A stretch of 63,795 bases of DNA, the filler included, from Octopus bimaculoides (lineage: Eukaryota): assembly GCF_001194135.2 (NCBI RefSeq). It is 4 parts of 3 records of this genome, joined end to end, with 100 filler letters (N's around TTAATTAATTAA, not from the genome) between each part and the next. Parts side by side here need not be neighbours in the genome. Positions count along the whole stretch, not along the records: positions 1 to 25,687 come from NC_068984.1; 3 more parts are not named here. One strand, 5' to 3'. Each line of letters starts with the position of its first letter. The stretch's first letter is position 1. Positions 45-23,939 of the stretch are shown here, one piece after another. The translations under genes and the position numbers were made by a program. The notes under the pieces are model-generated. The model had not been told where the DNA came from, did not search any database, and worked only from the letters and a program-made list of their open reading frames with translations.

Positions 45-490
45 TAGAAACAGTAGAGCGCATAAAATAAATTCAACCGTCACTAAGTGTTACTAAGGGT
101 ACCAAGACACCTACAGTGCTACAAATAAGAGTTAAAATACTCTTACTGCTGTAGGAAGCCCACAAATGCTAACAGGGGTTGTAACTACCCATCACCAACT
201 CGGGAATCATTCAGACTAAACGTTGTTTCGACTATTTCCGTAGGATTCATGAGTGAGGACCTCGGGCAATTCTGTCTGTCATCATGTATGTATTTTACCA
301 TAGAAGTCTATAGATGAATTAGCGGAATGCTAATGCATATACAAAATATCAATATAAATGGCAGAGAGCAATGCGATACCATAAAGAAAAATTCGATCGT
401 CACTAAATGTGACTAAGCGTACCAAGACACCTACACCTAGATATAAGAGTTGAAATACTCTTAATGTTGTAGGATGCCAACAAATGAATA
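45..490. repeat. Diverged ~125-bp direct repeat pair (about 45-175 and 360-490)
   Basis: Shared cgtcactaa.tgt.actaag.gtaccaagacacctaca...ataagagtt.aaatactctta...gtagga.gcc.acaaatg. Confidence 0.8.
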
Positions 491-829
491 CACACACACA
501 CACATACACACACAAACACGCACACACACACACACACACACGCTTACGCACACGCACACACACATAATTTAGAGAAAAGAACCAAAGTTCATGAACTCAT
601 CCATGAAAATCCATAGTCACATATAGAAAAATTTAATAAGTAAATACACTAAAAAGAACTATAATAAAATACATAGTAATAATCAATAAAATAATAAAAC
701 GACTACACGTGTTTCATAACCAAAATTTAAAATAGAAAATGAAACCTAATCAAATCGATTAAATGAAATCGATCGAAAATCAATTCTATTAAAGAATATA
801 ACAATAATAATAATAAAATGAAGGTATAT

Positions 830-2160
830 ATATCAACCAACAATAAATAACAAATGATTTTATATAAAAATACTTATTATATCAAGAATTAAAAGTACTT
901 ATTTTACTAATAAAAAAAAGAAAAATGTTTAACGATATTATACTTATCGAAGCTTTAGTTTAAACTAAAATTAAACTGTATTCTATTAACATATCGTTTA
1001 TTAGAATATCAGCTAACAATATATAACAAATGAATTTCTATAAAAATACTTATTTTAACAATAAATAAAAGAAAAATGTTTAACAATATTATTAAAAATA
1101 AATGTAATACTTATCTTATCGAAGTTTTAGGTTAAACTAAAATTATAAACGTGACATTATTAACTTTACCTTTTTGGAATATAAACTAACAGAAATATTA
1201 AATGAATTTATATAAAAATACTTATTTCACCAATAAATAAAAGAAAAAACATTTAACAATATTATTGAAAATAAATGCAAAGCTTATCTTAACGAATCTT
1301 TCGTTTGAAATACAATTAAAATGTTATACTATTAACTTAGCGTTTTACTAGAATATAAACTAACAATACATGAACTTATATAAAAATACTTATTTTACCA
1401 ATAAATCAAAGAGAAATATTAAACAATATTATTGAAAAAATTCAAAACTAATCTCATTGCAGTTTTGGTTTAAACTAAAATTTTAAACGTTATGCTATTA
1501 ACTTAGCATTAAATAGTATATCAACTAACAATAAATAACAAGTGAATTTATATAAAAATACTTATTTTACCAATAAATAAAAGAAAAACATTTAATAATA
1601 GTATTGAAAAGATAAATGCAATATTTATCTTATCGAAGTTTTAGGTTAAACTAAAATTATGAACGTTATATTATTAACTTTACGTTTATTATAATATAAA
1701 CTAATAAAAATAATAAATTAATTTATATAAAAATATTTATATCACCAATAAATAAAAGAAAAAACATATAACAAAATTATTGAAAAAAAATGCAAAACTT
1801 ATCTAATCGAATTTTTAGATTAAATAAAATTTTAAATGTTATACTATTAACATAACCTTAATTAGAATATTAACTAATAATAAATGAAATTATATAAAAA
1901 TACTTATTTTACCAATAAATCAAAAAGAAACATTAAACAATATTATTGAAAATAAATGCAACACTAATCTAATCGAAGTTTTGGTTTAAACTAAAATGTT
2001 AAACGTTATACTATTAACTTAGTGTTAAATAGGTTATCAACTAACATTAAATAACAAGTGAATTTATATAAAGATACTTATTTTACCAACAAATAAGAGA
2101 AAATCATTTAACAATATTATTGAAAATAAAAGCAATACTTATCTCAACGAAGCTATTTAA
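830..2160. repeat. AT-rich satellite, ~170-180-bp unit, about 7.5 copies
   Basis: The motif aatgaatttatataaaaatacttattttaccaataaataaaagaaaa recurs at about 852, 1028, 1201, 1371, 1543, 1720, 1883 and 2058. Confidence 0.95.
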
Positions 2161-2461
2161 ATTCATTTGTTATTTATTGTTGTTTGATATATATACATTC
2201 ATTTCATTATTATTATTGTTGTATTTTAACCNNNNNNNNNNNNNNNNNNNNNNNNNNNNNNNNNNNNNNNNNNNNNNNNNNNNNNNNNNNNNNNNNNNNN
2301 NNNNNNNNNNNNNNNNNNNNNNNNNNNNNNNNNNNNNNNNNNNNNNNNNNNNNNNNNNNNNNNNNNNNNNNNNNNNNNNNNNNNNNNNNNNNNNNNNNNN
2401 NNNNNNNNNNNNNNNNNNNNNNNNNNNNNCCTAATATTATTATTATTATTATCATTATTAC

Positions 2462-2518
<57 letters not shown>

Positions 2519-2574
2519 CACACACACAGAGTTTTTTTATTCACTCATTAATTACTCCTTCCTTTCTTTTCCAG

Positions 2575-2712
2575 GCTTTATATTTCAAAGATAGACTAGC
2601 TGGTGTGGCTATATGGAATCTGACACTCGGTGATCCGAAAGGGAAAATAAATGGTACTAAGTTTCCAATTGTACAAGCCGTGAAGACAGCCTTATTGTCC
2701 AAAGATAAATGA
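2575..2712 (+). CDS. Terminal exon of a GH18 chitinase / chitinase-like gene (upstream exons lie outside the window or in a gap)
   Basis: Strong acceptor (ctccttcctttcttttccag|G), phase 0. Encodes ALYFKDRLAGVAIWNLTLGDPKGKINGTKFPIVQAVKTALLSKDK*, matching the GH18 C-terminal pattern xxYxKxxxLGGxxxWxxDxDDFxG...xYPLxxxxxxxL. Same exon start position as recalled for animal chitinases. Missing from the ORF track because it is <60 aa. Confidence 0.75.
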   Translation, partial: ALYFKDRLAGVAIWNLTLGDPKGKINGTKFPIVQAVKTALLSKDK

Positions 2713-3151
2713 AGACTTCTTTTCCATCCCATACTCTCTCTTTCTCTCCCTCTCTCTCTCCCTCTTCCCCTTCTTTCTCTCTACCACACAAAATCCTCTC
2801 TTCTTCATTCTGTTACTCCAGTCTGATGAACACGCGTACACGCAGTCACATACACTTACGCTCGCATACACATACATATAATACAGTTATATATATATCT
2901 ACATGCATGCATACATGGACGCAATACAGAGATAGATAGATAAATAGATAGTGGCAGATAGATAGATAAAGAGAGAGAGCGAAAAGGAGAGATAGATGGG
3001 GAGACAGGGAGAGAGAGAGTAATGGAGATAATGAAGGAGATAGGGCTATACATATTTCAAAATAACGTTTGCATGTGCGCGTATGTTTGCGTACACATCT
3101 GTATATTTATTATGTATTCTGGTTGGATAATAGAATGAATATCAGAGACAT

Positions 3152-3167
3152 TAATAAAGCTTTATTA
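3152..3167. terminator. Palindromic bidirectional poly(A) signal TAATAAAGCTTTATTA
   Basis: Perfect 16-bp palindrome with AATAAA on + (3153-3158) and on - (3161-3166). It is the first AATAAA after the stop codon of each of the two convergent genes. Confidence 0.55.
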
Positions 3168-3257
3168 GTGAACCATTATCGACATGCAACCAATGGTGTC
3201 TAGCGGTGTTCGTATCGGTTGATGATGTTACTGTCACGTGAAGGTGCCACTGTTGGT

Positions 3258-3309
3258 TCATTGCGTCGTTAGCGGTTGATTAGGAGTGGGTAGTAAACAA
3301 GGCACGCCT
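3258..3309 (-). CDS. Gene A probable terminal exon (alternative acceptor at 3318 adds PNR)
   Basis: Acceptor ccaaacag| (or ccataag| 9 nt upstream, same frame). Phase 2 compatible, (L)GVPCLLPTPNQPLTTQ*, AATAAA ~90 nt after the stop. The true last exon could instead be hidden in the 3731-4078 gap. Confidence 0.5.
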
Positions 3310-4078
3310 CTGTTTGGGCTTATGGAATTAGGAATTGTGAATGCGTGCGCGTGTTGGTATGTGTGTGTGTGTGTGTGTGCGCGTTTGTGAGTGTATCTAC
3401 GTGTGCTGTGAAGGTATATGAGTCGTGGTAATGCGGGAAAAATAGTTTTCTTTCTGCACCAACGAAAACTACATACGTCTAAATTAAGTGCAAGGTTTAG
3501 CGGGTATTATTGCCTCACTTTATTAAACTTGACTGGTATTTATTTTATGGATCCTGAATGGCGTAAGGGAAAGGTGACCCTGATAAGATTTCAACTCAAA
3601 TAGAAAGGTAGTCAACTGAGTTATTCGAATATTTCCACTTTTAATAATATAGGAATGTGTAGCTTTTTTCTTCCTCGCATACAATGCTTTGGAACTGAAT
3701 TTTGCAAGGTGAGAGTCATGTGGAAGCGCANNNNNNNNNNNNNNNNNNNNNNNNNNNNNNNNNNNNNNNNNNNNNNNNNNNNNNNNNNNNNNNNNNNNNN
3801 NNNNNNNNNNNNNNNNNNNNNNNNNNNNNNNNNNNNNNNNNNNNNNNNNNNNNNNNNNNNNNNNNNNNNNNNNNNNNNNNNNNNNNNNNNNNNNNNNNNN
3901 NNNNNNNNNNNNNNNNNNNNNNNNNNNNNNNNNNNNNNNNNNNNNNNNNNNNNNNNNNNNNNNNNNNNNNNNNNNNNNNNNNNNNNNNNNNNNNNNNNNN
4001 NNNNNNNNNNNNNNNNNNNNNNNNNNNNNNNNNNNNNNNNNNNNNNNNNNNNNNNNNNNNNNNNNNNNNNNNNNNNNN

Positions 4079-4125
<47 letters not shown>

Positions 4126-4407
4126 ATGTATGTATGTATGTATATGTATGTATGTAAATGTGCGTGCGTGTGTATATATATTTATGAATGTATGTGTGTG
4201 TGTGTATCTGTGTGCATATAATACTTCTGTTTCTATTTGAAGTTCGCAAAGAACCGGAGTATAAGGCAGAAAACTTAGTGAACTGTTTCGAGAATTCTAA
4301 AATGAAGTCTTGTAGGAATATATATATATATATATAAAATTTGGATATGTAATATCAAAAGATACACACATTGAGTAATATTTTCAATCCGTGTTACATA
4401 GACATAC

Positions 4408-4483
4408 AATCCATTATCACTTTTGCCATCGGGAAACGCAGCGAACCGGTCATTGTCATATTGGAAACCCCATATCCACGACG
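4408..4483 (-). CDS. Gene A exon 4
   Basis: Long T-rich tract then aacaatag|, donor GGATT|gtatgt. 76 nt, phase 1 to 2. (S)SWIWGFQYDNDRFAAFPDGKSDNG. Confidence 0.7.
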
Positions 4484-5018
4484 CTATTGTTCACAGAATG
4501 ATAGAAAATAAAAAAATAAATAAAATAAATAAATAAAATAAATACAGTGTTATTCTTGTTTATCACGGATTTGTTCTTTTCTTAATCGAAATCTCAATAG
4601 TATTATTCCTGTTTATCTTGGATTTCCAGTAAATGAAAATGTCAGCTTGATAAGAGTTCATTACTCTGTGTCTATACAGAAGTGTTCTCGATCGTTAAAA
4701 GGGGGAGAAAGTATCATCAGCTCCATTGTATTTAGATCAGCTGAAATGAAATCGAGGTCTTCCGTGATAACGCATGGAATGATCTGGTAGCTTGTTTTGG
4801 GTATTATTTTAATCGTTGCAAAATAAAGGAGGAGTAAATGAAATATTAGGGAAAATATGAACTTGTAGTAAAAGAAGTGACAATGAATATTAACTATGGT
4901 TTTCTAATTAATTGCTCTAAGCTGACAATAATATAAACACCAGCCATTACACACACGCACAAACTGCGATACACACTCACTTTAGTTGAACACTCAAATG
5001 TTAAACACCAAGCTTAAT

Positions 5019-5345
5019 TCTGTTATCAATAGCCATATATAAGCCTTTGTTGTAAACAGTCAGAGCTATTATAAATAGCCATATACGGGTCTTTATTTTC
5101 AACTGCCAGAGCCTCTGTTATCAATAGCCATATATAGACTTTTGTTGCCAACAGCCAGAGCTTCTGTTATAAATAGCAATATATGGGCCTTTGCTGTTAG
5201 CAGCCAGAGCCTCTGTTATCACTAGCCATATATGGTCCTTTGTTGCCAACAGCCAAAGCCTCTATTATCAATAGCCATATATGCGTCTTTGTTGTCAGCA
5301 GCCAATGCCTATGATATCAATAGCCATATATGGGCCTTTATCGTC
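5019..5345. repeat. 49-bp minisatellite, about 7 copies
   Basis: Unit tctgttatcaatagccatatatgggcctttgttgccaacagccagagcc. Confidence 0.95.
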
Positions 5346-6452
5346 AACTTTTTCGGACTACATTCCTAGTGTTCCCCACCACTCACAACAAACATAGATG
5401 TAATTCTAATGGAAATTCAAAACGTATTTCACAAATAAAACTTAACAACATGAAAGAGAAAATTTACATCCCGCTTGTCACTACGTTGCTTTCCCTTTTT
5501 TTTACTGCAATGGGTGTACTTTGTGCAGGGATATCAGCTTTTCAACATCAAGCTGAAAAACACTAAGAAGTAGTCATAACCTCGCGTTCAATAATTTTCA
5601 GCTTAATTTTACTTTGCGTAGAAAGAATTTGGGCAGCTGTACTCTACTGAATATGATGTTGGGAGAGCAATAAAGTACATCTTGACTTTGTGCCACAGGG
5701 CAGAGTACCAGTCAGAAATGCATATGATTTTTTGAACTTTGGCCTCAGCTCAGTATCATTTTAAAGTGAAACCAATTCTTTATCTGCTATTCTTGTTTAC
5801 TCATTACAGATATCTAGGAATCACTCGGACTGGTATTTCAAGCAAAAGTAAATATACTGAAGTCTGTCAGATATATCTTTGTGCAGCTCATATTTGCACA
5901 GAGACATATGTATGTGAACAATATACTTAAGCAACACAAGTGTGAACAATACACGTGAATGTTATCTTCTGGTATGCGCTTTTCCATTTCCAAATCAGAA
6001 AGGCTCTGAAACTAAAAGAACTCACGACGGCTTATGTTACATTTGAATAACTTTAACTTGAAGAGAAACGTGGAGAGGACTAATTTTACCTCGAAAAGTT
6101 TAACCCCATCTCCTTGCAGTGGCAAATTAATTTCATTGAGCTTTGTGATTCCTGCTTGATACTTTTTAGTTCATCACAAAAACAAAAAGCAAAAAACACA
6201 AACAAAACAAAAACAGAATTCGAGTCTTGCAAGAATTCAACAACTGTTTTAAAAAGGGGATAGAAACTTTCTGGCGGTTTCCCATTATCCTCCATCAAAC
6301 TACTGTATGCAACAACAGTAATTCAAAATCTTTATCATTCCTAATGTAGAACTGTTGAATCAGTAAGGAATCAATTTTATCAAACATGTGCCTTGATTTT
6401 ATTTACTTCTGTGATAACAGTGCTCAACAATTTGTTAAGTCCACCACCAAAG

Positions 6453-6641
6453 TTATTTGGTTTCTTCTCTTTCTTCTTTTTTGCCTTCTTCCTCGTTTGT
6501 TGTCGAGGGAGTTGCCTCTGTGTTGGGAGGGCCACATTCTACTCGCAAGTGGCCCTTCTGCCCACACTTCAAACAGCGTGGTTTCCTCCCCTCGACTTGT
6601 ACTTTTAAAACGACGTCCTCTCCTAAACACAGAATTACTTC
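6453..6641 (-). mobile_element. Retroelement ORF1/gag remnant with CCHC zinc knuckle
   Basis: Unlisted frame reads EVILCLGEDVVLKVQVEGRKPRCLKCGQKGHLRVECGPPNTEATPSTTNEEEGKKEEREETK* (CX2CX4HX4C). Flanks (about 6050-6900) are probably the same decayed non-LTR element. Confidence 0.6.
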
Positions 6642-7339
6642 TCATCAAGAGAAAAACAAGAAATTTTTTAAGCAAATTCTCCCAAAGGAGAACTCAAAAG
6701 TTCAAAGGTTCAATCCCTTCCCCCATAGGATGAAGGATACAGTTCAAAAAGTTTCAACAAGTTTCAATAACAATGTTCTTTCCCCCGTAGGGGAAAGCAC
6801 AACATTTCAACAACGGCCACTCAAGCAGGTAACAATTTTAACAAAAAACAATCACAAGCAGCAATACACAACAGGTTCAACAACGATTTTAACAATAACT
6901 CCGCAAATAAAAACACGGCGCTTTGTACCTTACAATTTCTACGTCACATACCTCATTGCACATCACACTGTCAGTACGCATGCGCCTTTATAAGTTTTAG
7001 GACAGCTCACTTGCTATCCCACAGGGGGTATCAGGATTCCACCACAACTCCATGTGCCCTCTATATGCTTTTTAAAAGTCATGCCGTTGTTCTCTTCAAT
7101 TTTTTTTCATATAAGTTTTGTTCCAAGTATCCCAATACTGAGTTCACGAAGACTGGAGCAAATTGCGTCCACATAGCTGTGCCTCGAATTTGGAGGTAGT
7201 TTTTTTTTTTCCATTGAAAAGGAATGTATTGCTTTCGAGGATGAGGCTGACCGCGTCTAGTATGTAGGTTACAGTAAATCTACTGAGGATCGCTTCTCTA
7301 TATTTTTCGACCCAATATTTTATGGCAGTAAGTCCTAAA

Positions 7340-9200
7340 TCATGTGGAATGTTTGTATATAAGTTTGTTACATCAAAACTAACAGCGATTGTTTCCTAAT
7401 TTGGACCAAATCCCTAGAAAATCTGGAAGAATTCAGCACCTTCCTCAATAATCTACACCCTAGACTCAAATTCACAAGACAAATTACCATTTATTGACAT
7501 AACGCACCTTACCCTCAGCAAGCNNNNNNNNNNNNNNNNNNNNNNNNNNNNNNNNNNNNNNNNNNNNNNNNNNNNNNNNNNNNNNNNNNNNNNNNNNNNN
7601 NNNNNNNNNNNNNNNNNNNNNNNNNNNNNNNNNNNNNNNNNNNNNNNNNNNNNNNNNNNNNNNNNNNNNNNNNNNNNNNNNNNNNNNNNNNNNNNNNNNN
7701 NNNNNNNNNNNNNNNNNNNNNNNNNNNNNNNNNNNNNNNNNNNNNNNNNNNNNNNNNNNNNNNNNNNNNNNNNNNNNNNNNNNNNNNNNNNNNNNNNNNN
7801 NNNNNNNNNNNNNNNNNNNNNNNNNNNNNNNNNNNNNNNNNNNNNNNNNNNNNNNNNNNNNNNNNNNNNNNNNNNNNNNNNNNNNNNNNNNNNNNNNNNN
7901 NNNNNNNNNNNNNNNNNNNNNNNNNNNNNNNNNNNNNNNNNNNNNNNNNNNNNNNNNNNNNNNNNNNNNNNNNNNNNNNNNNNNNNNNNNNNNNNNNNNN
8001 NNNNNNNNNNNNNNNNNNNNNNNNNNNNNNNNNNNNNNNNNNNNNNNNNNNNNNNNNNNNNNNNNNNNNNNNNNNNNNNNNNNNNNNNNNNNNNNNNNNN
8101 NNNNNNNNNNNNNNNNNNNNNNNNNNNNNNNNNNNNNNNNNNNNNNNNNNNNNNNNNNNNNNNNNNNNNNNNNNNNNNNNNNNNNNNNNNNNNNNNNNNN
8201 NNNNNNNNNNNNNNNNNNNNNNNNNNNNNNNNNNNNNNNNNNNNNNNNNNNNNNNNNNNNNNNNNNNNNNNNNNNNNNNNNNNNNNNNNNNNTCCTACTT
8301 ATAGAAAATAGCATACAACGCGAAAAAGAGATGGAACAGCTTAGAGCAACACGAAAAAGACGAACCCATCAAAGGAACACAATACCATTTCTAGTAATAC
8401 ACAATCCGCATCACCAAAACATATTTAATATCATCAAAATTTGCCAATCATGAAACAAAGTGAAAAATTAAAAAAACATAATAACTAATCAAACACTTAT
8501 CTTAAGCAAAAGAAACTATAAACAAAGGCAAAATTCAACATGAAAAACGGAATAACGCACTCACAGTATCCAAGTATAATGATAACAGATGTTGAATGTG
8601 TCAATACTTGCATACGGGTAGAACAAACAATAGACAGATTTTCGCAAATGCAGATATGAACGGCAGAAGCAGAAATTTGGTCTACTGCATTAAATGACCG
8701 AATTGCGAGGAATTATATATAGGCGAGACAGGGAATGCCTTATAGCAATGCTCACGAGTCCACAGACAACAAATCCGGAACACTAATGTTCGTCAAATTC
8801 CATTCAGCGAACATCTAGACATGTTTCTAATTTTTCCTTTCCACAAACTACATGACACAAGTGGGGCTGGAAGAAAGATAAAAGAAAAATGGTTTATTAA
8901 AATGTTCAAACCTGTTCTTAACGGAAATAACAGCGATAATATAACAACCAGTTAATGATGTGGATTGATAAATATAAACAAGTTAGATAATATATCGGTA
9001 CTCCTGGCAAACCGTGATGTTTAAGAGCATGTGGATTGGTCAAAAAGGTATTCTAAAAATTCAGCTGGCTGTAGCGTTCTATAAAGTACTAAAGTTGTCA
9101 ATAATTCGACTGTCAGTTAAACACATTTGAAATCTGATGAGTACACTATGTATGAAAGCGCTAATTTTATTATAAAAACCGAAGTACAAAACGTAATTTC
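7340..9200 (+). mobile_element. Decayed Penelope-like element (Neptune-like): RT C-terminus and GIY-YIG endonuclease, split by an N gap
   Basis: DCFLIWTKSLENLEEFSTFLNNLHPRLKFT..LPFIDI (RT); IPFLVIHNP (thumb); NLVYCIK*PNCEELYIGETG...RVHRQQIR...FSEHL (GIY-YIG). Multiple stops and frameshifts. Confidence 0.85.
9129..9200 (+). ncRNA. Minimal type I hammerhead ribozyme in the PLE 3' repeat
   Basis: gaaat-CTGATGA-gtaca/cta/tgtat-GAAA-gcg...c-GTA-atttc. Stem I (gaaat/atttc) and stem II pair; the base after GAAA deviates from the consensus C. Confidence 0.65.
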
Positions 9201-9654
9201 TTGAGAGTATTTAGTTACTGTCCCTCTTTTTTTAACGAACACAATCAACAAGGACTCAAAGTCAACTATTTTTGTGAGTTGGAAAAATAGACGATTGCAT
9301 TAATAACTTCCTTCTTACACTGCTCCTTCATTACCTGTTTTTCTTGGGTTATACTGGCGTTGGGTGTCAGGCTTATGTTGTACGTAGTGCTATATTCTTT
9401 TTAATTTCCTTAGAAGATTTCTTGCGTCACATACAGTAGAATCTAGGTCTGTTATGTCCCGGTTCATTACCACTGCAAATGGTAAATTACTCATATTCTT
9501 ACTGCATACTTTCACGACATAACCGTACGAATAACATGTGTCTTGGCTTTGTGCGGAGAAACAGATGCAGATAAACAGACAGAGAAAGAGGCAGAGACAG
9601 ACAGAGAGACTGGATAGCTAGCTAGTTAGATAGATAGATTGATAAAAAGACTGA

Positions 9655-9698
<44 letters not shown>

Positions 9699-9757
9699 AA
9701 TAAAGATAGATAGATAGATAGATAGCTAGATAGATAGATAGATAGATAGATAGATAT
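9655..9757. repeat. (GAAA)n(GATA)n microsatellite
   Basis: Visible directly. Confidence 0.95.
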
Positions 9758-10920
9758 AATTACACGCACATATACAAACACAGACACATAGACATATAAA
9801 CATTGATAAACTCAGAAACTAAGAGGTTAGGTTAAACANNNNNNNNNNNNNNNNNNNNNNNNNNNNNNNNNNNNNNNNNNNNNNNNNNNNNNNNNNNNNN
9901 NNNNNNNNNNNNNNNNNNNNNNNNNNNNNNNNNNNNNNNNNNNNNNNNNNNNNNNNNNNNNNNNNNNNNNNNNNNNNNNNNNNNNNNNNNNNNNNNNNNN
10001 NNNNNNNNNNNNNNNNNNNNNNNNNNNNNNNNNNNNNNNNNNNNNNNNNNNNNNNNNNNNNNNNNNNNNNNNNNNNNNNNNNNNNNNNNNNNNNNNNNNN
10101 NNNNNNNNNNNNNNNNNNNNNNNNNNNNNNNNNNNNNNNNNNNNNNNNNNNNNNNNNNNNNNNNNNNNNNNNNNNNNNNNNNNNNNNNNNNNNNNNNNNN
10201 NNNNNNNNNNNNNNNNNNNNNNNNNNNNNNNNNNNNNNNNNNNNNNNNNNNNNNNNNNNNNNNNNNNNNNNNNNNNNNNNNNNNNNNNNNNNNNNNNNNN
10301 NNNNNNNNNNNNNNNNNNNNNNNNNNNNNNNNNNNNNNNNNNNNNNNNNNNNNNNNNNNNNNNNNNNNNNNNNNNNNNNNNNNNNNNNNNNNNNNNNNNN
10401 NNNNNNNNNNNNNNNNNNNNNNNNNNNNNNNNNNNNNNNNNNNNNNNNNNNNNNNNNNNNNNNNNNNNNNNNNNNNNNNNNNNNNNNNNNNNNNNNNNNN
10501 NNNNNNNNNNNNNNNNNNNNNNNNNNNNNNNNNNNNNNNNNNNNNNNNNNNNNNNNNNNNNNNNNNNNNNNNNNNNNNNNNNNNNNNNNNNNNNNNTATA
10601 TATATATATATATATATATATGAAACACTTATACGCCGGTGATGTTGCCAGTTTCAATGTTCTTCTGAATTTCTTTGAGTACCAATTTGGTAGCACACTC
10701 CACGGCGTTTTTCTGACTTGACTTTACACAGTGACGGCTGGTTAGCGTAATGATTTCAGTCACATCAGCTGGACATCTCACTTCAACTGAAAGTTGACAA
10801 AACATTATATATATTTAGATATACATGCACATATACATATACGTATAATAGTTGCAAGTAAGTGATTCTCAAAAAACAACGAATATAGGACTCAGTTCAC
10901 AAATTCACAAATTTCACCTG

Positions 10921-11130
10921 TAACTGCCCCACAGAACACATTTCCAAATACCTTGACCTCATCCTTTCCCCTTTAGTCGCTGCCTTCAGTCTCAGATTCA
11001 TGACACCAACCACTCCCTTCGTATCTACCATTCCTTTTCTTTCCCTCCCGGTTCCTCACGTCTCCTCTTCCCCATGGACATTGAATCTTTATTCATAGTG
11101 TTCACCTACAACGACGGTCTCTTAGTATAG
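10921..11130 (+). mobile_element. Penelope-like RT fragment
   Basis: NCPTEHISKYLDLILSPLV, frameshift, then HDTNHSLRIYHSFSFPPGSSRLLFPMDIESLF...NDGL, matching the PLE PTE.IS..LD..L.PLV / DT / LxTMDV.SLYT motifs. Confidence 0.75.
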
Positions 11131-11199
11131 GCCAGGTCGATACAATTTGGCAGCAGTGATGTCATGGACAGTGCCGTCAGAATCCAGTGAACTGGAACA

Positions 11200-11660
11200 G
11201 ATGTTGCGTGGCATTCATCTATAACAATGCCGGTGGTCAAAACAGACGACAATTATGCGCGTCAACAGATAGATGCGAATTACAGTTGGAAGAATGCGAA
11301 TAACACGTCTTTCAATGTCGTGAAATCATTCTCTCTGTTACGTAAAAAGGAACTCCAACGAATGAACCATATCCAAGACGTGAAGATAATTCAAAACTCA
11401 TTCGTTTACCTGGGTATTTCGATGCCCTCAAATATAAAACTGCTTCACGAAATGTTTGCGTAAATCTGATCAAACATTTCTGAAATGTTTGCGTAAACTG
11501 ATCAAACATTTCTGAGGACTTCAAAGGATATGGAGAAGCATTTTACACCAGTTTGTTGCATCAACCGTCTTCATCCCATACGCCTCATCCAAAGCAGAGA
11601 ATAGCTACCAGTTCTTGGCTCCATCATCTAAAATCTCACATATATTAACAAAGCTAACAA
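11200..11660 (-). mobile_element. Possible Helitron Rep-helicase remnant
   Basis: Stop-riddled frame ICEILDDGAKNW*LFSALDEAYG...LLHIL loosely resembles the Helitron LLxDDxxW..L.EA linker. A 29-bp tandem duplication lies at 11450-11515. Confidence 0.25.
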
Positions 11661-12386
11661 AAATATTTGGCCCATAATATGTAAATAGAGATACGAAGGA
11701 AAAACATTTTATACTGAAAGCGATGTTTCAGCTCTCCAAAGAATCAAAGAACACAAACTAAAATAAAATACGTATAGACTGGCAGTTGTGGTTTAGCATA
11801 CATACATAATATATGCCCCTACCATATATTTATAGTCGTAAACCTTCGTTGTATTATGCTTTCGCTAACTGTTTTAGTTGCCTATATAATCACGAGGAGA
11901 TTTAGAAACATTCTCGGCCCTTTCAACTTGACTCTAGATGAGACAGTTGGATGAAGAGGGCTCTTCTCTGCAATTGGTCTTATACACATTTTCAGGTGAA
12001 GTGACCGGAGCAACATGCAAATCAAAACGACTGTTAATGTTATACTTTTGGAAGCTACTGTTACAGTGATTTCGATTCAAAGTTCCCGAGGTAGCCAACG
12101 AATTTTAGTACACTTCTGAAGGGGGCCAATCATTCCGAAATATATCCATAAGAAGATTCCCAGTACTTTTACCTGCTTGCTTTTGAAAAGCAGGTTGTTT
12201 CAATATCTTTTTTAACCGTTAAAGCTAAGGCTTTTGAATAAATAAATGCAATTGAGCACGACATACCATATTTCAGGTATTCTGAATTAGTATTCTGGGT
12301 GTCAATCTGTTTCTCTCTCCCCCTCTGTGTGTGTCCGGGTCAGTGCGTGTCAGCGTGTGTGTGTAGGTCAGTGTTTGTGTCAGTGT

Positions 12387-12423
<37 letters not shown>

Positions 12424-12594
12424 CGTGCGCGTGTGTGTGTGTGTGTGGGCGTGCGGTTGTGTATTTGTGTAGTGGAAAGAGAGGGAGATGTAGACAGGAC
12501 TGCATTAAATGATATCTCTTGCTATGTATGCATGGTACCAATTATAAAATTGCATGTGTGTCTAATAATTCGCAATAAACCAAATAAGACTTAC

Positions 12595-12676
12595 ATGGAT
12601 TTCGTTTTCCAACAATCTTCACTTCACAGTTGTCTGCAAAGAAGGTAATTACCAGCGGTGTTCCATCGATTTGAAA
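12595..12676 (-). CDS. Gene A exon 3
   Basis: Acceptor tcttccttactatctctatccaag|, donor CCAT|gtaagt. 82 nt, phase 0 to 1. FQIDGTPLVITFFADNCEVKIVGKRNP. Confidence 0.75.
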
Positions 12677-13875
12677 CTTGGATAGAGATAGTAAGGAAGA
12701 TATGTTGAAAATTGTTACTGTATACAAACTCATGCACTCATACACATGTGCAAACATTCACGCGCACACACACGCACAGATGCACACACACATGCGCGCG
12801 TAAAGGTAACCTTTGTAGCCAATATGCCGGATATATTTAAACATTTTTCTTTAAACGTAAATGACCTATTGCAAGTTTTTATGTAATACTATTTGTTTCA
12901 AAATATATTTGGATATATATATTTTTGTGGTGCTAAGATATGTCTGAAGTTGCTCTTTTCTTGGTGTCTATGATGTGTAAAGCTTTTGACATTCTGTTTA
13001 TTGATAATTTTAATTTTGTGATCGAAGAAAATCCCTTCTTTATGTTTTACTTAATATATTTTCGTGTAATTCCAAAATTGATATGCAATACATCAAAAAG
13101 GAACATGGCCAAAAGAAATGGGGTTTATTCATGAAGAGGACTGGTACAGGATAATATAGCTTGTATTGTGGTTTAATACTCTGGAGGAAAGATAGTTAAT
13201 GCGACATAGCATCGTCAATTGGAAGCTGTAATTAAGACAGAATAAACATTTGTTTCCCTCCTTGAAATCAGAAAAGACTTTCTTTTCAACCTCCTGTTAC
13301 CACTAACAATTCCAGACATATATATATAGAGAGAGAGATTCAACTCCTACAACATTTAAAATAAATACAACAGCCACACTAACGCACTTAGTAATCCGAA
13401 TATATGAAAATTAGATCAGCTCTCTGGAAATGCATTTAAGAGTTCATATAGTATCTAAGGCTAAGTCTTCCATACTGGATCTTTACATTCTATCGCTTTA
13501 TGATTTGTTTTCTATATCTTCTTGAATTCTGTACTTTATTCACATCATAATTATTTACCATCTCAACCTTTACCATTTCCTCAAATTTTATCAAATTTTG
13601 CTGTTACTATTCTTAGGCTAAAGAATAACAATAACAAAAACAACAAATTTTAAACTTATATGAAGGACTAATTTTGTCGTTAGTCTCATGATTGTATCAA
13701 GGTATAAATAAAATTTCAGCATTATTGTTGTAATGTATTACAGAACATGTCCATAAATTTATTAGCCAAAACTGTGTTACGATGAGTGTAAAGATCTTCA
13801 CAATATGATCGTAGACAGATAGATCGAGCGATAGAATGAGAGATAGAAAGAAAGTAAGTGAGAGAGAGAGAGAGG

Positions 13876-13924
<49 letters not shown>

Positions 13925-14049
13925 TTGTACATGTGTATTGGAATCTTCACCAGCAAACGTATACCCTCTCTATCTGACAGTTGTCTATAACCCACACAAA
14001 TTAAATCAAGCATGTATAATTGCTGTTTGTTTTTATATCCACCAGAATA

Positions 14050-14265
14050 TTCTTTTCTACTCTAGGTACAAGGCTCGAAATTTTTGGGGAGGGGGCCAGT
14101 CGGTTAGATCGATCCCAGTACGCAACTGATACTTAATTTAGCGACCCCGAAAGGATGAAAGGCAAAGTTGACCTCGGCGGAATTTGAACTCAGAACGTAA
14201 AGACAGACGAAATACCGCCAAGTATTTCACCCGACGTGCTAACGTTTCTGCCAGCTCCCCGCCTT
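14050..14265 (-). mobile_element. tRNA-derived SINE, family A (near complete; in gene A intron 2)
   Basis: A-box tggcagaaacgttag and B-box gagttcaaattcc, followed by gtcaactttgcctttcatcctttcggggtc..taagta.cagtt. Related copies at about 3500-3600, 32885-33075, 35180-35330 and 37490-37570 (-), and 45255-45440 and 59440-59680 (+). Confidence 0.85.
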
Positions 14266-14457
14266 ATATCCACAAAAATATTGTATAAACGTGTTGGTTG
14301 CAATTGTCATAACACAAAGTATTGGCTGATGCACAAATAGTTATGTTCAATCGTACACAGCAGTACCGAAACAAAACGTTTGTTACATATCTGAGATTTC
14401 GGATTTTTGTATCAGAAGCCCATTCAGGGAGAGGGATAAACAAGACATTTTACATAC

Positions 14458-14618
14458 CTGCCCACTTTCCGGGAAAATCAATTTGAAGAATTTTTTAAGT
14501 TTATCTCCAAGTCCTTTCTCTAGAACTTCTTTTATTTTGGTAAGTGTTTGCTGTACATCAAAGCCTTCACAGAAATCGAACTGGCAGTAGGCAGTGACCA
14601 ACACAAGTAAAAAGACAA
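14458..14618 (-). CDS. Gene A exon 2: signal peptide h/c regions and amphipathic helix
   Basis: Acceptor tatttacag|, donor CAG|gtatgt. 161 nt, phase 1 to 0. VFLLVLVTAYCQFDFCEGFDVQQTLTKIKEVLEKGLGDKLKKFFKLIFPESGQ. Confidence 0.75.
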
Positions 14619-14932
14619 CTGTAAATATATATATATATATATGACTGTGTATATGTATATATGCATGTATGTATATCTATCTATCCATCTACATACATAC
14701 ATACATAAACATACACACACACGCTCACGCTCACACACACGTACACATATAAATATATATATATGTATAGAGAAAATAAGAAAAACATGGAAAATAAATG
14801 GATGTAATTACTGATTTATTTGCATGTTATAAAAAGATAACGTTTTTTTAAAAAAAAAACATAAATAAATTGATTGAAAATTGAAAGCTTGAAGAAAAAT
14901 AAATTAAGATGAAAATAGAAAAAAGAACCTAC

Positions 14933-14954
14933 ATTTATGTTTCAGTCGTACCAT
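14933..14954 (-). CDS. Gene A exon 1 (start of an unrecognised secreted protein)
   Basis: ATG GTA CGA CTG AAA CAT AAA T|gtaggt = MVRLKHK + phase 1. Joins exon 2 to give a canonical signal peptide MVRLKHKFVFLLVLVTAYCQFDFCEG. Confidence 0.6.
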
Positions 14955-15234
14955 CGAGCTGATGGGAATCTACAAGCATATCGTTTAATGCTAAGGAAGT
15001 TGCCATATTCAAGGTATATGTGGTAGGACTTCGTCAGGGTTCAAAAAGAGCTAACGCAACTTTTGAGGGAAGTGTATAATATTGGCAGGTTAAAAGTTAA
15101 AACTACGTATTGAGATTTTATTTGATTGGTAGATTTTGAATATTTGTGAATATACCATATATAATATATTATAGCTAGGAAACAAATAAATAAATAGAAA
15201 AAAAAAGATGAATGAAGTATACAAATATAGAGTT

Positions 15235-16950
15235 GGCTCTGTTGGTGTTGCTGTTGCTGTCGTTGATGCCGGTAAGGCTGTTCGCTGTGGTGGTGGTGTC
15301 AGTGTTGCTGGTTCTGCCCTCGTGTCTGCAGCTACTATGGCTGCTATAGTTTCTGCTTCTAGAACTGGCTGGGTTCGTCCGCACCTCGGCTTGATAGACG
15401 ACACCTTTGGTTTCGCAGCGGCCTTCTATTGGGCAACTGTTGCGGATCCTGCATGAACAACCCGCTTCTTCCCGTTGCTTAGGGGCTCTAACTAAAATTC
15501 TCTAAATACTAGTTGCACAACTAAACGAGACCCTAATGTTGTGCCTGTTGAAAATGGGAGCGTACCTATGAGAGTTTGTAAAATGTTTGTCTATTAATTT
15601 TAGGAAAAGTCTATCCACGTTATAGTATTAAAGGAGAAGGGTGGGTTGGGTGGATGAACCAAATTGTATTTCTGCGGCGTTTCCTTCTGCGAGTGTTGGG
15701 TTCCGGCATATAGGAGATGCTGTCCTTGAACCCGCTGGCGGCTAGGGCGTCGAAGACCTCTGGGTTAGAGAAAAGTCTCGAAATCCTCTTACTAACACCC
15801 TTTACCAGGTTCTTAAACACGATGGGTGGGTAGCATGAGGCTGTGTTGATGTACGTTAGTCTCTCGTTTGGTTTGCGGTAGGGCCTGTAGGTACCGGAAC
15901 CCAAGTCCAGCGTGACATCTAAGAAGTCTGCTGTGGTGAGGTTAGTCTCTATGGTGATCTTCAATCCCATGAAGTCAAGCGTGCTGATTCAAAGGAGCCC
16001 GTGGGGTCCTATTGCTTGACCCACGCCAAACCTTTGTTAAACAGTACTGTATTCCTATCGTGAATAATAATTTCTATATCCCTGTCGCTAATGTTAGTTA
16101 GGCTCCTAGCGAAAGAAAGCGCTTTGGTCCGTAACCCTTTCGATATAGACGGGTACGAATCGACTATATCGAATTGGGTTGAACCTTGCTCTGCCTCTAC
16201 CCTTGTTGACGTTAAACCATGCGGCCACTTCGCTGGTGCTGCGCCACAAGGAGATGTTACTGACCCTTCTTATGGTGTTGCTGATATCTTGCAAAATATG
16301 TTTGCTCGCCAGACCGATCTCGGATTTGGCTGGGTTGATCAGGCGGCACTTAAGGTCAGAGGCAAAGTTTGGTTTGTGATCATTCATGGTAATGAAAGCG
16401 TTTCTTTTAGCTAGGATTTCTATCCTGTCTCCTGTCTCTAAATTGTAAGCTAATTTTTTAACCTCACTGTTGATGTCCCTATATGTAAGCGGGAGTGGGG
16501 GTGGCGTCTGTAAGTCTGTGTAATATTATTTTCTAGTAGCCTATTTATTGTATTCTATGGTGTCTAGCCTATATAAGTTTTTCGTCTTATCGCAGAAAAT
16601 TAGGGACCTATCCGAGTTTTTTAATGATCTAAAGTCGGCACGGAGTTTACGTTGGAATTTCAGTTTTGGGATAATTCCTAGGAGGTCCGCTTCAAAGGGT
16701 TCGAGGTCTTTAATTCTGGGCGGGTATTTCCTCGATCTAATGCCGTAGTTGTATCCCTCCGGGCCTGGTGCGGTTAGGTCGCAGTGGAAATCTTTCCATC
16801 TAATACGCCTAATCACGTCCATGATCTTCTCCAGAATCATTCGGGTATATAGTTCGTTGGACGCGTGGGGATGTTTTTGTTGGAGTATCCAAGGTCGAAT
16901 CGTTCCATATTTAAGGGGCTTGTGGCCTCCGTAAAAATGTAGAAGCATTG
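15235..16950 (-). mobile_element. Penelope-like element (Hydra-clade-like), inverted 5' part: N-terminus, RT, Cys linker and GIY half
   Basis: YSNKNIP; IRRIRWK; CDKTKNLY; KCRLINPAKSEIG; GLKITIETN..DFLDVTLDL..GTYRPYRKPN; RNTIWF; FLKLIDKHF..IFNRHNIRVSFSC; CSCRIRNSCPIEGRCETKGVVYQAEV, then a Ser/Asn/Thr run. The RT YxDD region is deleted near 15990. Confidence 0.85.
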
Positions 16951-17004
16951 CGCTGGTCAGCTATTTGGCGGAGACCACGTGGACACTGCGAAAAACTCCG
17001 GCTA

Positions 17005-17255
17005 GGTAACATCGACAGCACCCCCTCCACATCCGGCAATAACATTACCACCTCTACTACCAACCCCACCTTCACCAAAACCAACACCAATGGCCGCAGC
17101 AACCTCATCGTCGACCACAGCGTCAGCAACAACAGCATCACATTGGTCGACCCCAGTAACATCATCGTCGGCAGCACCGGCAACGACAATGACAGCGGTA
17201 GCAACATCATTGTCGACAGCAGTGGCAGCAGCAGCAACAGCAGCAGAAACAGCAA

Positions 17256-17287
<32 letters not shown>

Positions 17288-18500
17288 GCAGAAACAGCAG
17301 CAGCAGCAACAGCAGCAGCAGCAACAGCAGCAGAAACAGCAGCAGCAACAGCAGCAACAGCAGCAACAGCAGCAGAAACNNNNNNNNNNAAACAGCAGCA
17401 GCAACAGCAGCAACAGCAGCAACAACAGCAGAAACAGCAGCAGCAGCAACAGCAGCAGCAGCAACGGCAGCAGAAACAGCAGCAGCAGCAGCAACAGCAG
17501 CAACAACAGCAGCAGCAACAGCAGCAGCAATAACGGCAGCAGCACCAACACATGCACCACCGGCAACACACGCGGGCGAAGTAACACTACCGAAGCATCC
17601 ACAATCTCCAGTGGTAGCTCCACCAACAGCCCCAGCTCCAGCACCATCTGAATCAGTACCATTAGTAGCACCAACAGCAGCAGCAGCAACAGCAACAATA
17701 GCGGCACCGACGGCGGCAACAATATCGGAAACTACAACCACAACAGCACCGATAGCAGCAAAAACAACAGCGAAAGTAGGTACGACACCGACTCCACGCA
17801 TCCAAGAAAATACATTGGATGCATGGAAATTTCCGTTAAGAAACGTCTTTCCAGCCATAGATCCTCCTTCAGGGTCCTGGAAAGGAGATATGTAACATCG
17901 CTGACCAGCCATTTCTGGCAACTGAATGAAGATGGAATTCCATACTCGATATCATCGAAAACCCTCCACCGTCCGGGTTCGTACATAAATGTAACGAAAC
18001 GCTGCAAGCTATGAATAGCCGAACGCATGGAAATCCTGAAAAACTCGCACGTACCAGGGACCATACCGAACCCCGAACGGAGATTTTGGGACCGATCTTG
18101 CATTTCAGGAGATTCCTATTAATGTTTTGGGACCCGCATAATAACGATAATATCAGTATTAACGATAATTACACCACAGCTGGAAATTGATTGCTGATGA
18201 GAGTACTCTACCTTTTACCCTCCTAGCCGACAGGTAGCGTGACTGAAGGAGGACGACGCAGCCGGAAGCCGATGACCAGCTCCAATGGGAGATAATCCCC
18301 ATTGTTTACATCTGTATCGTTTTCCCCCCTCCATATTTTAAAGAGGCCATATGCCAACAGGTCTTAAGGTCTGAAAATATGTCAGAAAGGTACCCTTTAT
18401 GGCGAGAAATCCAGGGTGACCCTATAAACTGGCCTTCACCAGTAATTAATATATATATCATATTGTGTCTTGAGGGAGGGTCATTACGCCAATAATGATA
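17005..18500 (+). mobile_element. Same PLE, forward 3' part: Ser/Asn-rich insert, YIG half of the endonuclease and 3' UTR
   Basis: (AGC/AAC)-rich frame leads into PRKYIGCMEISVKKRLSSHRSSF...TSLTSHFWQL...RCKL*IAERMEIL..., frameshift, TEILGPILHFRRFLL. The 3' end position is approximate. Confidence 0.8.
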
Positions 18501-18903
18501 ATAATACTCACACTAGTTCAATGCCACTTCGTTATTGTTAATCAATTGATTAAACATCTGGTCAGCTATCTAATCGATTGTTTGTTTATTATGCTGGATA
18601 AACAATTAATCAGTTGTTTTTTCGTCATCATTTCCGACCTTTTTAGTGACTTAGTGACTTCTCCTCTCTCTCCTGGGTTTGCTGTGAGTCTGTCTGATAA
18701 TCGGTCTCATACCTGTGTACCTGCATACTCGCTTGTGTGTTTGCTTAAAAGAGGATGTAAGGCTGAAAGTAAACGAAAAGTCTGTGTGTAGATAGAGGGG
18801 GCGGGCATGCACTCGTGTGTGTGGTTGTGTGTGTACATCCGCATGGCTGCTTGTATGTGTGAGTGTGTGTGTGCGTGTGTGCGCGCGCGTTCATGTGTTG
18901 ATG

Positions 18904-18959
<56 letters not shown>

Positions 18960-18966
<7 letters not shown>

Positions 18967-20480: not shown

Positions 20481-20627
20481 TTAATTCATATTTTCCGATT
20501 TATTTCATTAATAATTATTTCGCTGTTTTTTTTTTTATCTGTCTTTTTGAGTGAGAATAAGTAAAGTAAATATCCTATACTTGCATTTTTTGGTAGTGTC
20601 AATAAGTGTCAAATGGATGCATTAGGA

Positions 20628-20857
20628 CAGTGGTTCTTAATCTGTGTTCAGTTGAACCCCGGGGGTTCGGTGAGCCAAATCTATAGGTTCGGCAGAAGGC
20701 CTCTGACATAAATTTATGTATTCATTTTGATATAAGTTGCGATGTAAGAGGTTCGGTAATTGGTCGGTGGATTGGATAAAGGTTGGGTTTGTGGTCGGTG
20801 GGCGTGATTGGGGTTCGGCACCTCTAAAAAGGTTATAATCACTTACAAGAACCACTA
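20628..20857. mobile_element. hAT-type MITE
   Basis: TIRs cagtggttctt... / ...aagaaccact(a), with the internal gggttcggc motifs typical of Charlie-like MITEs. Confidence 0.7.
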
Positions 20858-21099
20858 AATAATAGTCCAGGTAAATTGGTATAAATGGGTGTTGGACTAC
20901 ATGAAAGAGGAGTTAAATTTGTTTCAAATCCAGGCCACATGCAAGCTGTTGCAAAAATTCGAAATTTCTATAAAAGAGACAAAATTTAACTCTTTAGGGA
21001 CAAAAGGATTTATGCAGTATGCCGGATTTGTACGTCTTTCTCTACATTAATCTTTTCAAGGCAACATAAAATTAGCTACTTATATTATATCAATAGTGC

Positions 21100-21184
21100 T
21101 AATATGGTCTTCATTCCAGTGGGCCCCGGAATTATTGGGGGTAAGAAAAGTGGGTCCCGGATACAAAAAGTTTGAGAACAACTG
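21100..21184. mobile_element. hAT right terminus (possibly belonging to the 19-20 kb element)
   Basis: Ends in aaaaagtttgagaacaactg, the reverse complement of a CAGTGGTTCTCAAACTTTTT-type TIR. Confidence 0.6.
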
Positions 21185-22643
21185 GGTTATATGCATTCTG
21201 CTGTCGTTAACCCTACCCTTTATATATATATGTCTATACCATCATATATATGCTCAACTAGCCACAGGAAAGCACCAATGTATGCATATTGCGTGAGTGA
21301 TAACATTGGTGTTGAAGATCTACAACCTCTTATGTAAATTTTCTCTTCAATTTTCATAATGTCTCATTTATAAGAACAGACTTGTGTATTTGTCTTAACC
21401 ACGGGTTTTCAATGTTTTTTTTTTTATCAATGGATCTCTTTGACTGCTATTATATTTTGATAAACTCCCATAGCCATTGAATGTATAAAAACTAGTTTTA
21501 TAGATACTTCTTTCAAAATTCCTATTTTGTTTTTCACACATTAACTTGTGTAGGTTGAACGATATAAAATGTAAGAGAAAGGACCCTAGCTGTTTCTCGC
21601 AATACATGCCAATACATACATCTAAAACGAAGGATAGATTGTAATGATAAAGTCAGCTTCCATTTTAAGATTTTATTTTAAATAAAATGTTAAACAAGTA
21701 TTCGCAATAGACATAAATTCACTTTAGATAAATGTGGATATTCTATACCGTAGATAGCATATAACATCTATTTTCAATTTTGTGGAGTTTAAACATCTTT
21801 AGACAGCGTTCAGTGACTGTTCGTAATGCATCCAGTCCCATAGCTTTGTTTTTTTTTCTCGTCGTATTTTATTCTTCGTGTTTGGGCCCAAAATAAATCT
21901 ATGTATATATGTAAAAGTCATGACAGATCCAAGAAAAGGTTTATAATTTTTACATAAACTATATATTTAGTAGCGAACAGTAAAAAACATTTTCGCAATG
22001 CTATATCAATTCCCAATGAGATTTAACAGCAATAATGCATAAAACTTTTTAAAAAACACCTCGAAATAATCATACTGGATCAGGGCAGTCCAGGTTTCAA
22101 AGACCAACAACAAAAGTAATCCTATATGTTCTATACCTGAAACAAAAATATGCATAATAATGATGGCTTGAGTGGCTTTCAGCAGATGTAGGGCTACTGA
22201 TCTTGGAGAGAGCAAGGGTTAACACACAGCAGCATAAAAATAAAATTGAAAAAAAAAAAACTACAGCAGACGTTGATGATTTGAAAATATGATGAAAGTC
22301 AAGAGAAAGAAAGATTAAAAGATTCCATCTTACTTACTGGAAAGTCTCATTGTTGTTGTTTAGCGGTAAATTATCGAGGACCAACTGTTGAAGTGTCCTA
22401 CGTATCTCTTATCTATATATGCAGGAATATAAACTCACTGCTATACATACATGTGTGCGTGTGTATATGGGCATGTGTGTCTGAGTATGTATGTATGTAT
22501 GTATGTATGTATGTATGTATGTATGTATGCATGCATGCAAGTATATATGCATGTGTGTATGAATATATAAACGTACATACTAACACGCACACATGTAAGT
22601 ATGTATTTATATATGTATGTATTGTGTGTGCAGATAATTATAT

Positions 22644-22682
<39 letters not shown>

Positions 22683-23248: not shown

Positions 23249-23311
<63 letters not shown>

Positions 23312-23683: not shown

Positions 23684-23896
23684 TTACTCTTTTACTCTTT
23701 TACTTGTTTCAGTCATTTGACTGCGGCCATGCTGGAGCACCGCCTTTAGTCGAGGAAATCGACCCCAGGACTTATTCTTTGTAAGCCTAGTACTTATTCT
23801 ATCGGTCTCTTTTTGCCGAACCGCTAAGTTACGGGGACGTAAACACACCAGCATCGGTTGTCAAGCGATGGTGGGGGGACAAACACAGACACACAA

Positions 23897-23939
<43 letters not shown>

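Follow-up and report, generated by a model that had tools for sequence, protein, structure and literature searches.

LOC106870724 and its four coding exons

The minus-strand gene described here lies in a stretch of Octopus bimaculoides DNA of 63,795 nucleotides (nt), the window, which joins four parts of assembly GCF_001194135.2; the gene is in the first part, positions 1 to 25,687. An initial annotation, made from the sequence alone, had proposed at positions 3258-14954 a hidden five-exon gene for an unrecognised secreted protein, a candidate cytolysin or antimicrobial. We found that the locus is a true gene, LOC106870724, which is already annotated in RefSeq as encoding an uncharacterized protein and hence is not hidden, and that the five-exon model is wrong in three of its five exons. 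The gene almost certainly has four coding exons and a product that is secreted, as predicted from its sequence. It is a member of an orphan family that is restricted to molluscs, small, tandemly duplicated and fairly fast in its evolution, and of this membership and of the antiquity of the family we are highly confident. As a whole, the explanation towards which we lean, by a little more than an even chance, is that LOC106870724 is a four-exon gene of this orphan family and that its product is a secreted pro-protein which would be cut by a convertase.

When the 130-residue product of the five-exon model was used as a query in a protein search, four Octopus proteins were matched, over only 64-68% of the query. 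The best match, P0001, is RefSeq XP_014772380.1 and UniProt A0A0L8HI86, "uncharacterized protein LOC106870724", which has 137 residues. In a tblastn search with P0001 the C-terminal 52 residues mapped to 10632-10787, a segment that is not used in the five-exon model, and the first 13 coding bases were located by pattern search at 22338-22350, with GTAAGT next to them. The four exons joined together give a coding sequence of 414 nt, the translation of which is identical to P0001, and the gene spans 11.7 kb on the minus strand.

Coding exon 1 (22338..22350, minus strand) lies outside the span that was proposed initially. It consists of ATGAGACTTTCCA, that is, Met-Arg-Leu-Ser and one further base, followed directly by the donor GTAAGT, and O. 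sinensis, O. vulgaris and a chiton share this first coding exon of 13 nt. Exon 2 (14458..14618, minus strand), which was located by tblastn with P0001-P0004, is identical to exon 2 of the five-exon model and encodes the remainder of the signal peptide (14563-14618) and an amphipathic helical segment (14473-14562); its acceptor TTTACAG and its donor GTATGT are both conserved in the relatives. Exon 3 (12595..12676, minus strand; FQIDGTPLVITFFADNCEVKIVGKRNP) is likewise identical to exon 3 of that model, and an exon of 79-82 nt in the same phase has been kept from octopus to chiton. It carries the motif IDGTPL, Cys75 and Gly81-Lys82-Arg83, the codons of which (GGA AAA CGA, 12602..12610, minus strand) form the G-(R)-K-R motif, a candidate convertase and amidation site. 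The terminal coding exon (10629..10786, minus strand), which the five-exon model missed, encodes (F)EVRCPADVTEIITLTSRHCVKSSQKNAVECATKLVLKEIQKNIETGNITGV and ends with TAA at 10629-10631. By tblastn it is 98% identical to P0001 and 68-85% identical to the relatives, its acceptor is TTTCAG followed by TTGAAG, and it carries three of the four invariant cysteines.

The exon lengths of 13, 161, 82 and 158 nt in the window compare with 13, 170-173, 82 and 158-164 nt in the relatives. The O. sinensis genes LOC115210997 and LOC115211078 and the O. vulgaris gene P0004 have the same four-exon structure with canonical and nearly identical splice contexts, and collinearity of the window with the orthologous locus of O. 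sinensis (L002) extends across 8595-25413. Identity to the orthologues is 91-95% in the true exons and 85-92% in the introns. Pairwise ratios of nonsynonymous to synonymous substitution (dN/dS) between family members were 0.38-0.55, which indicates that selection on the family is purifying but relaxed. The signal peptide is almost invariant as protein at a normal dS; between P0001 and P0003 its dN is 0.019 and its dS is 0.233. This predicted signal peptide (MRLSIVFLLVLVTAYC...) of about 23 residues has Met-Arg followed by a 12-residue hydrophobic core in all members and would leave a mature protein of about 114 residues; its candidate cleavage sites lie after Ala14, Cys16 and Gly23. The order along the 137 residues is thus signal peptide, amphipathic helical segment, a modelled beta-hairpin region with IDGTPL and Gly-Lys-Arg, and a C-terminal strand and helix that are also taken from the models.

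The five-exon model

The part of the initial annotation that stands is that a multi-exon minus-strand gene for a small secreted protein exists here, with a signal peptide at its N-terminus and, in exon 2, a Lys-rich amphipathic helical segment. The arithmetic of the model is also right. Its five minus-strand segments, with GT-AG sites and matching phases, sum to 393 nt, are free of stops and translate exactly to the 130 residues given, and the first 30 mature residues do contain 7 Lys and 4 acidic residues, as counted. Exons 2 (14458-14618) and 3 (12595-12676) are real, while exons 1, 4 and 5 are chance open frames. The number of such frames is large: on the 3' side of the exon 3 donor we counted 627 AG..GT segments of 40-300 nt that are open in the required phase, and 5' of exon 2 there are 321 candidate first exons running from ATG to GT in phase 1, ten of which have strong donors, including both the proposed one and the true one. 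Because there are so many candidates on either side, a stop-free path here is no more than would be expected by chance. This case shows that stop-free GT-AG paths across the AT-rich 10-kb introns of octopus are common by chance.

Exons 1, 4 and 5 of the model are rejected. Proposed exon 1 (14933..14954, minus strand) lies inside true intron 1, its open frame is merely 63 nt, no homologue begins MVRLKHK, and its ATG is GTG at the orthologous position in O. sinensis. Proposed exon 4 (4408..4483, minus strand) is intergenic, 6.1 kb past the true stop, has a weak pyrimidine tract at its acceptor, and no protein homologue of it was found. Proposed exon 5 (3258..3309, minus strand) lies about 550 nt past the end of a convergent GH18 (chitinase-like) gene, and its TGA is TCA in O. 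vulgaris. The region described as aromatic-rich lies within the last 45 residues (SSWIWGF...TTQ) and is an artefact, as is the N-terminus MVRLKHKF. Among 1.84 billion representative proteins there was no match to this C-terminus, and a Pfam search with the 130-residue chimera gave only DUF6882 at E = 0.073, which is below threshold.

The alternative that the five-exon transcript is nevertheless real, for example as an isoform joining exon 3 to 4408-4483 and 3258-3309, has in its favour that it is free of stops with GT-AG at all junctions and that identity to O. vulgaris is 98.7% in the exon 4 region. However, this conservation is not exon-specific because the immediate flanks are conserved to a similar degree: 128 of 131 positions are identical over 4380-4510, exon 5 is 96% identical and its flanks are 94% identical, and the regional background over 2500-6500 is 92-95%. 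Exons 4 and 5 both lie in a block (82-6459) that shows no collinearity with the orthologous locus of O. sinensis and that matches O. vulgaris DNA located 3' of another paralogue, P0004, beside the convergent GH18 gene. The orthologue P0005 and the counterpart of this block are about 24 kb apart in O. vulgaris, with the complete P0004 gene between them. Such a transcript would also need to skip the conserved terminal exon, its C-terminus is the one without a match among the representative proteins, its start and stop codons are lost in O. sinensis and O. vulgaris, respectively, and hundreds of equally valid chance paths exist. We therefore regard its existence as exceedingly improbable and, on these genome comparisons, as effectively refuted already.

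An orphan family in octopods and a chiton

An exhaustive search of the 1.84 billion representative proteins returned six clusters, five from octopods (Octopus and Argonauta) and one from a chiton. The similarity was full-length, with E = 7e-37 to 2.7e-22 for the Octopus relatives, 7.4e-31 for Argonauta and 1.2e-21 for the chiton. The relatives are O. sinensis LOC115210997, LOC115211078 and LOC115210761, Argonauta hians GAB1610283.1 and Liolophura sinensis XP_064596543.1. No further members were found by a profile search or by a chiton-seeded search of a 5.8-billion-protein index, and P0012 is only an exon 2 read-through of a P0008 orthologue. In the alignment of octopod and chiton sequences Cys75, Cys90, Cys105, Cys116, Gly57, Gly63-Thr64 and Lys82-Arg83 are invariant, and the motifs (I/L)(D/E)GT, which is IDGTPL here, and G-(R)-K-R between the first and second cysteines are present. 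A glycine directly precedes the basic cluster in all seven distinct sequences (VGKR, IGKR, TGKR, FGRKR, IGRKR and FGKR) and the loop around it is otherwise variable. The intron positions and their phases 1, 0, 1 are common to the gene in the window and the relatives examined. Two members are in tandem about 14 kb apart in O. sinensis, and O. vulgaris likewise has two members side by side.

The chiton member is a polyprotein. XP_064596543.1 has a signal peptide, a short propeptide ending in EKR and three near-identical units of about 127 residues, joined as ...AKPKR followed by QLVTG.... Its gene has exons of 13, 239, 79, 302, 79, 302, 79 and 170 nt in phases 1, 0, 1, 0, 1, 0, 1, and the 13-nt first exon and the intron positions are as in octopus. 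The joints between the units are encoded inside single 302-nt exons; therefore the polyprotein is a genomic fact, and the units must separate post-translationally at Lys-Arg. On the evidence of the shared sequence features and exon structure, the family is older than the split between chitons and cephalopods and its gene structure has been conserved since that ancestor. What remains of interest at this locus is a taxonomically restricted family of secreted proteins for which no domain, structure or literature was found. The family is noteworthy for a gene structure kept since the chiton-cephalopod ancestor, for an invariant motif of the amidation and cleavage type, and for the polyprotein in the chiton.

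Two more adjacent members, P0009 and P0014, were seen in O. vulgaris (CAI9721795.1 and CAI9721796.1); their annotated N-termini are without a signal peptide and look like mis-predicted first exons, and O. vulgaris may have two sub-clusters of the family. A separate observation concerns the O. vulgaris orthologue P0005 (CAI9721111.1), in which a 39-nt minisatellite (L005 12677-13084) repeats the end of exon 3 and its donor region ten times. The donors in the array are disabled (CTAAGT, and CTGAGT in the last copy), and an eleventh copy retains GTAAGT. The array is in frame, so that the predicted protein has ten 13-residue units (SKSYSEIIGKRSP), each with Gly-Lys-Arg, and it has the look of intron sequence that was recently exonised and that imitates the precursor of a multi-copy amidated peptide. 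In the O. bimaculoides window this repeat is present as a single copy.

Domain, fold and structure searches

Searches of Pfam with P0001-P0003 gave no match at E <= 10 and the other members gave only unrelated weak ones. The Argonauta protein P0006 matched Lipocalin_4 at E = 0.14, which is below threshold and is the only calycin match in Pfam. An assignment of the chiton protein to TSP1_ADAMTS was rejected, as its 28.5 bits are reached only as the sum of three partial 24-residue matches (profile positions 7-30 of 55). A search of PDB sequences with the family profile gave only bS20, at E = 0.08. Patterns modelled on the lipocalin and fatty-acid-binding protein (FABP) signatures of PROSITE match no family member, and the lipocalin/FABP domain label that UniProt attaches to the paralogue A0A0L8HGV6 was not reproduced by Pfam or by these patterns.

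In two AlphaFold2 runs the predicted local distance difference test score (pLDDT) was 65.6 in both and the predicted template modelling score (pTM) was 0.53-0.58, with one of five models above 60 in the first run and two of five in the second. Both runs gave the same order of elements: a helix at 26-39, a short helix, five strands and a helix at 110-130. The models put Gly-Lys-Arg at the hairpin turn that links strand 3 (76-80) to strand 4 (84-96), between Cys75 and Cys90. A comparison by AlphaFold plus Foldseek had been suggested as a check of the initial annotation; with these low-confidence models the best E values against PDB were 0.11 and 0.078, none was <= 0.001, and no actinoporin was among the 50 best matches listed per search. 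The top matches were generic alpha-beta-alpha domains such as dsRBD with template modelling scores of 0.3-0.46, and no calycin was among the matches listed.

Possible processing of the secreted protein and its alternatives

The mechanism that we consider most likely is that the protein enters the secretory pathway as a pro-protein and that an enzyme of the prohormone-convertase type cuts it after the invariant G-(R)-K-R, that is, after Arg83. Trimming by a carboxypeptidase and amidation of Val80 might follow. The products would be an N-chain of about 57 residues, possibly ending in ...KIV-amide, and a C-chain of about 54 residues. Since the N-chain has one Cys and the C-chain has three, the two chains would probably be disulfide-linked, and the product would act extracellularly as a signalling or defence factor. 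What points to a processing signal is that the glycine with its dibasic pair is the sole invariant feature of a variable loop, which fits such a signal better than it fits a structural core. The modelled position of the motif in a hairpin turn and the Lys-Arg joints of the chiton polyprotein point the same way. Judged from these features, we put the cleavage of the LOC106870724 product by a convertase at slightly under an even chance.

Precedent for processing of this kind comes from the sex-pheromone precursors of Sepia, in which dibasic cuts give Cys-containing products of 1-8 kDa, one predicted product being a 64-residue C-terminally amidated peptide; several of the products were detected by mass spectrometry, which the authors take as demonstrating dibasic processing (PMC3484142). 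The octopus protein resembles the SP-alpha/beta precursors of Sepia officinalis and the GKR-punctuated FMRFamide precursor in having a signal peptide and a motif of the Gly-Lys-Arg type, the classical signal for cleavage plus amidation. As in SP-alpha/beta, its products would contain Cys and are predicted to be of 5-8 kDa, and the chiton member shares with repeat-unit precursors the Lys-Arg joints between its units. However, there is no sequence similarity to the Sepia precursors, and unlike these and neuropeptide precursors, which give many short peptides, the octopus protein has a single internal site within a folded domain of about 114 residues. The more specific proposal, that this is an ancient molluscan pro-protein cut into an amidated N-chain and a Cys-rich C-chain and thus a new two-chain hormone, pheromone or host-defence factor, tandem-expanded in octopods and arranged as a polyprotein in chitons, seems to us somewhat unlikely. 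If the processing is true, a new family would be added to the molluscan repertoire of processed secreted peptides.

Several points weigh against cleavage. The invariant Gly-Lys-Arg would suit an uncleaved globular protein just as well, as a turn of its structure or as a binding motif, and the cleavage products would be unusually large folded fragments, unlike the classical short neuropeptides. Both the placement of the motif in a hairpin turn and the disulfide pairing are tentative because the structural models are of low confidence. In the literature, searched by LOC numbers, accessions and peptide strings, we found no paper naming any family member, and none of the family's UniProt accessions is listed in the supplements to three proteome papers on O. 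vulgaris, of which two deal with skin mucus and one with ink.

The first of these points leads to the alternative that the protein is a small, uncleaved, globular secreted alpha/beta protein, such as a carrier of hydrophobic ligands or an extracellular binding protein, in which Gly-Lys-Arg is a turn or binding motif and only the Lys-Arg between the chiton units is cut. The models agree with this in being compact and alpha-beta-alpha, with very hydrophobic strands (TPLVITFFA) and amphipathic helices, as do the weak Lipocalin_4 match of the Argonauta protein and the UniProt label of the paralogue A0A0L8HGV6. The release of units of about 14 kDa from a polyprotein is reminiscent of carrier polyproteins, of which the nematode polyprotein allergens are an example. 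Against it, neither Pfam nor Foldseek gave a lipocalin or FABP match above threshold, the PROSITE-type patterns are without a match in the family, and a Gly plus dibasic motif that alone is invariant within a variable loop is more in keeping with a processing signal than with a structural core. We consider this alternative unlikely.

It is improbable, in our judgement, that the true protein is a membrane-active host-defence or venom factor whose Lys-rich amphipathic N-terminal helix inserts into membranes. The helix itself is there: the hydrophobic moment is 0.52 over residues 35-52 of P0001 and reaches 0.70 in very amphipathic cationic stretches of the paralogues P0003 and P0004 (GNKFKKFFHGITKFFKEI). 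The mature proteins are mildly basic, with isoelectric points of 7.6-9.1, and a conserved signal peptide with a faster-diverging mature region and tandem duplication is common in families of toxin and antimicrobial genes. However, the segment is locally cationic in P0001, P0003 and P0004 and non-cationic in P0008 (moment 0.38, net charge -1), and five of the seven members have a helix-bearing N-terminal part with a net charge of about 0, the range over the family being -1 to +2. The cationic helix, as predicted from sequence, is real in the LOC106870724 protein and does not appear to be conserved family-wide. No conserved site would free it as a short peptide of less than 50 residues: the one basic site that is conserved is G-(R)-K-R at 81-83, which comes after the beta-hairpin, and the Lys46-Lys47 pair is not conserved. 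In the models it is followed by a beta-sheet; helices packed on a sheet would be amphipathic anyway. The family is also missing from the skin-mucus and ink supplements mentioned above.

Comparison with known membrane-active proteins leads to the same view. Actinoporins are generally Cys-free beta-sandwiches of about 175 residues. The octopus protein is like them in being small and secreted with an N-terminal amphipathic helix ahead of a beta-rich region, but it differs in its mature length of about 114 residues, its four conserved Cys and the lack of a match in Pfam (Anemone_cytotox) or Foldseek. With the linear cationic helical antimicrobial peptides (piscidin, pleurocidin and magainin) the Octopus paralogues share an amphipathic segment rich in Lys, Phe and His at residues ~40-57 (KFKKFFHGITKFFKE); unlike those peptides, this segment would not be released as a short peptide at any conserved site, its cationic character is not kept in P0008, and it is embedded in a larger protein that is predicted to contain disulfides. 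Neither in Pfam nor in the PDB sequence search nor in Foldseek was there any similarity to actinoporins, saposin-like proteins or other pore-formers, and the function of cytolysin or antimicrobial that was assigned initially is unsupported.

Assembly gaps, neighbouring gene and intron sequence

The 25,687-base piece that holds the gene has 36.7% G+C and six runs of N, and it is the same as chromosome CM046604.1 of GCA_001194135.2 in sequence and also in its gaps. Three of the gaps fall within the span of the five-exon model, all of them 3' of the true stop codon (10629-10631) and inside introns 3 and 4 of that model, and for this reason the true and the proposed reading frames are both independent of them. 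Their gap-free counterparts in O. vulgaris measure 722 nt for the gap at 9839-10596, 211 nt for that at 7524-8292, and 1024 nt for that at 3731-4078 together with 57 further bases. The flanks of all three are collinear with these gap-free O. vulgaris loci, which supports continuity. The only gap inside the true gene is a run of 10 N in intron 1 (17380-17389). As the gap at 9839-10596 begins 33 nt past the true stop, the 3' untranslated region (3' UTR) and the poly(A) site are probably hidden in it. Poly(A)-signal hexamers occur 97-1000 nt past the stop in the relatives, which is not decisive, and the equivalent region of the window is the gap.

The convergent GH18 gene is represented at 629-2712 (plus strand) by its 3' part, the last coding exon of which ends at 2712 (...FPIVQAVKTALLSKDK*). 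In O. vulgaris this neighbour also comes after P0004, and proposed exon 5, which is on the opposite strand, may be antisense to the 3' UTR of the GH18 gene. In the region of this gene 830-2152 is taken up by an AT-rich tandem repeat of 174-176 bp, with about 7.7 copies at 78% identity. At 6459-7183 the two octopus genomes differ: where O. vulgaris has about 24 kb including P0004 (from L005 18257 to L004 23523), O. bimaculoides has about 720 nt of unrelated sequence with no assembly gap, within which there is an open reading frame (ORF) of 178 residues at 6457-6993. Either one family member has been deleted or inserted lineage-specifically, or the assembly is collapsed here. Scans of the window with Rfam and for tRNAs found no RNA genes.

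In true intron 1 a (CAG)n-like array of about 109 units (17217-17544) surrounds the gap of 10 N and yields long artefactual poly-Ala, poly-Gln, poly-Leu and poly-Cys ORFs on both strands. Serial ORFs of 93-139 residues at 19158-20324 (plus strand) and 15620-16948 (minus strand) in the same intron resemble decayed mobile-element genes, and no Pfam match to them was obtained at E <= 0.1. The segment 18963-20427 is also found in the intron of the O. vulgaris orthologue, but the O. sinensis locus yielded no match to it. Finally, a 49-bp tandem repeat of 6.8 copies at 5019-5348, in the intergenic block, is also present in O. vulgaris (L004 ~24670-24990).

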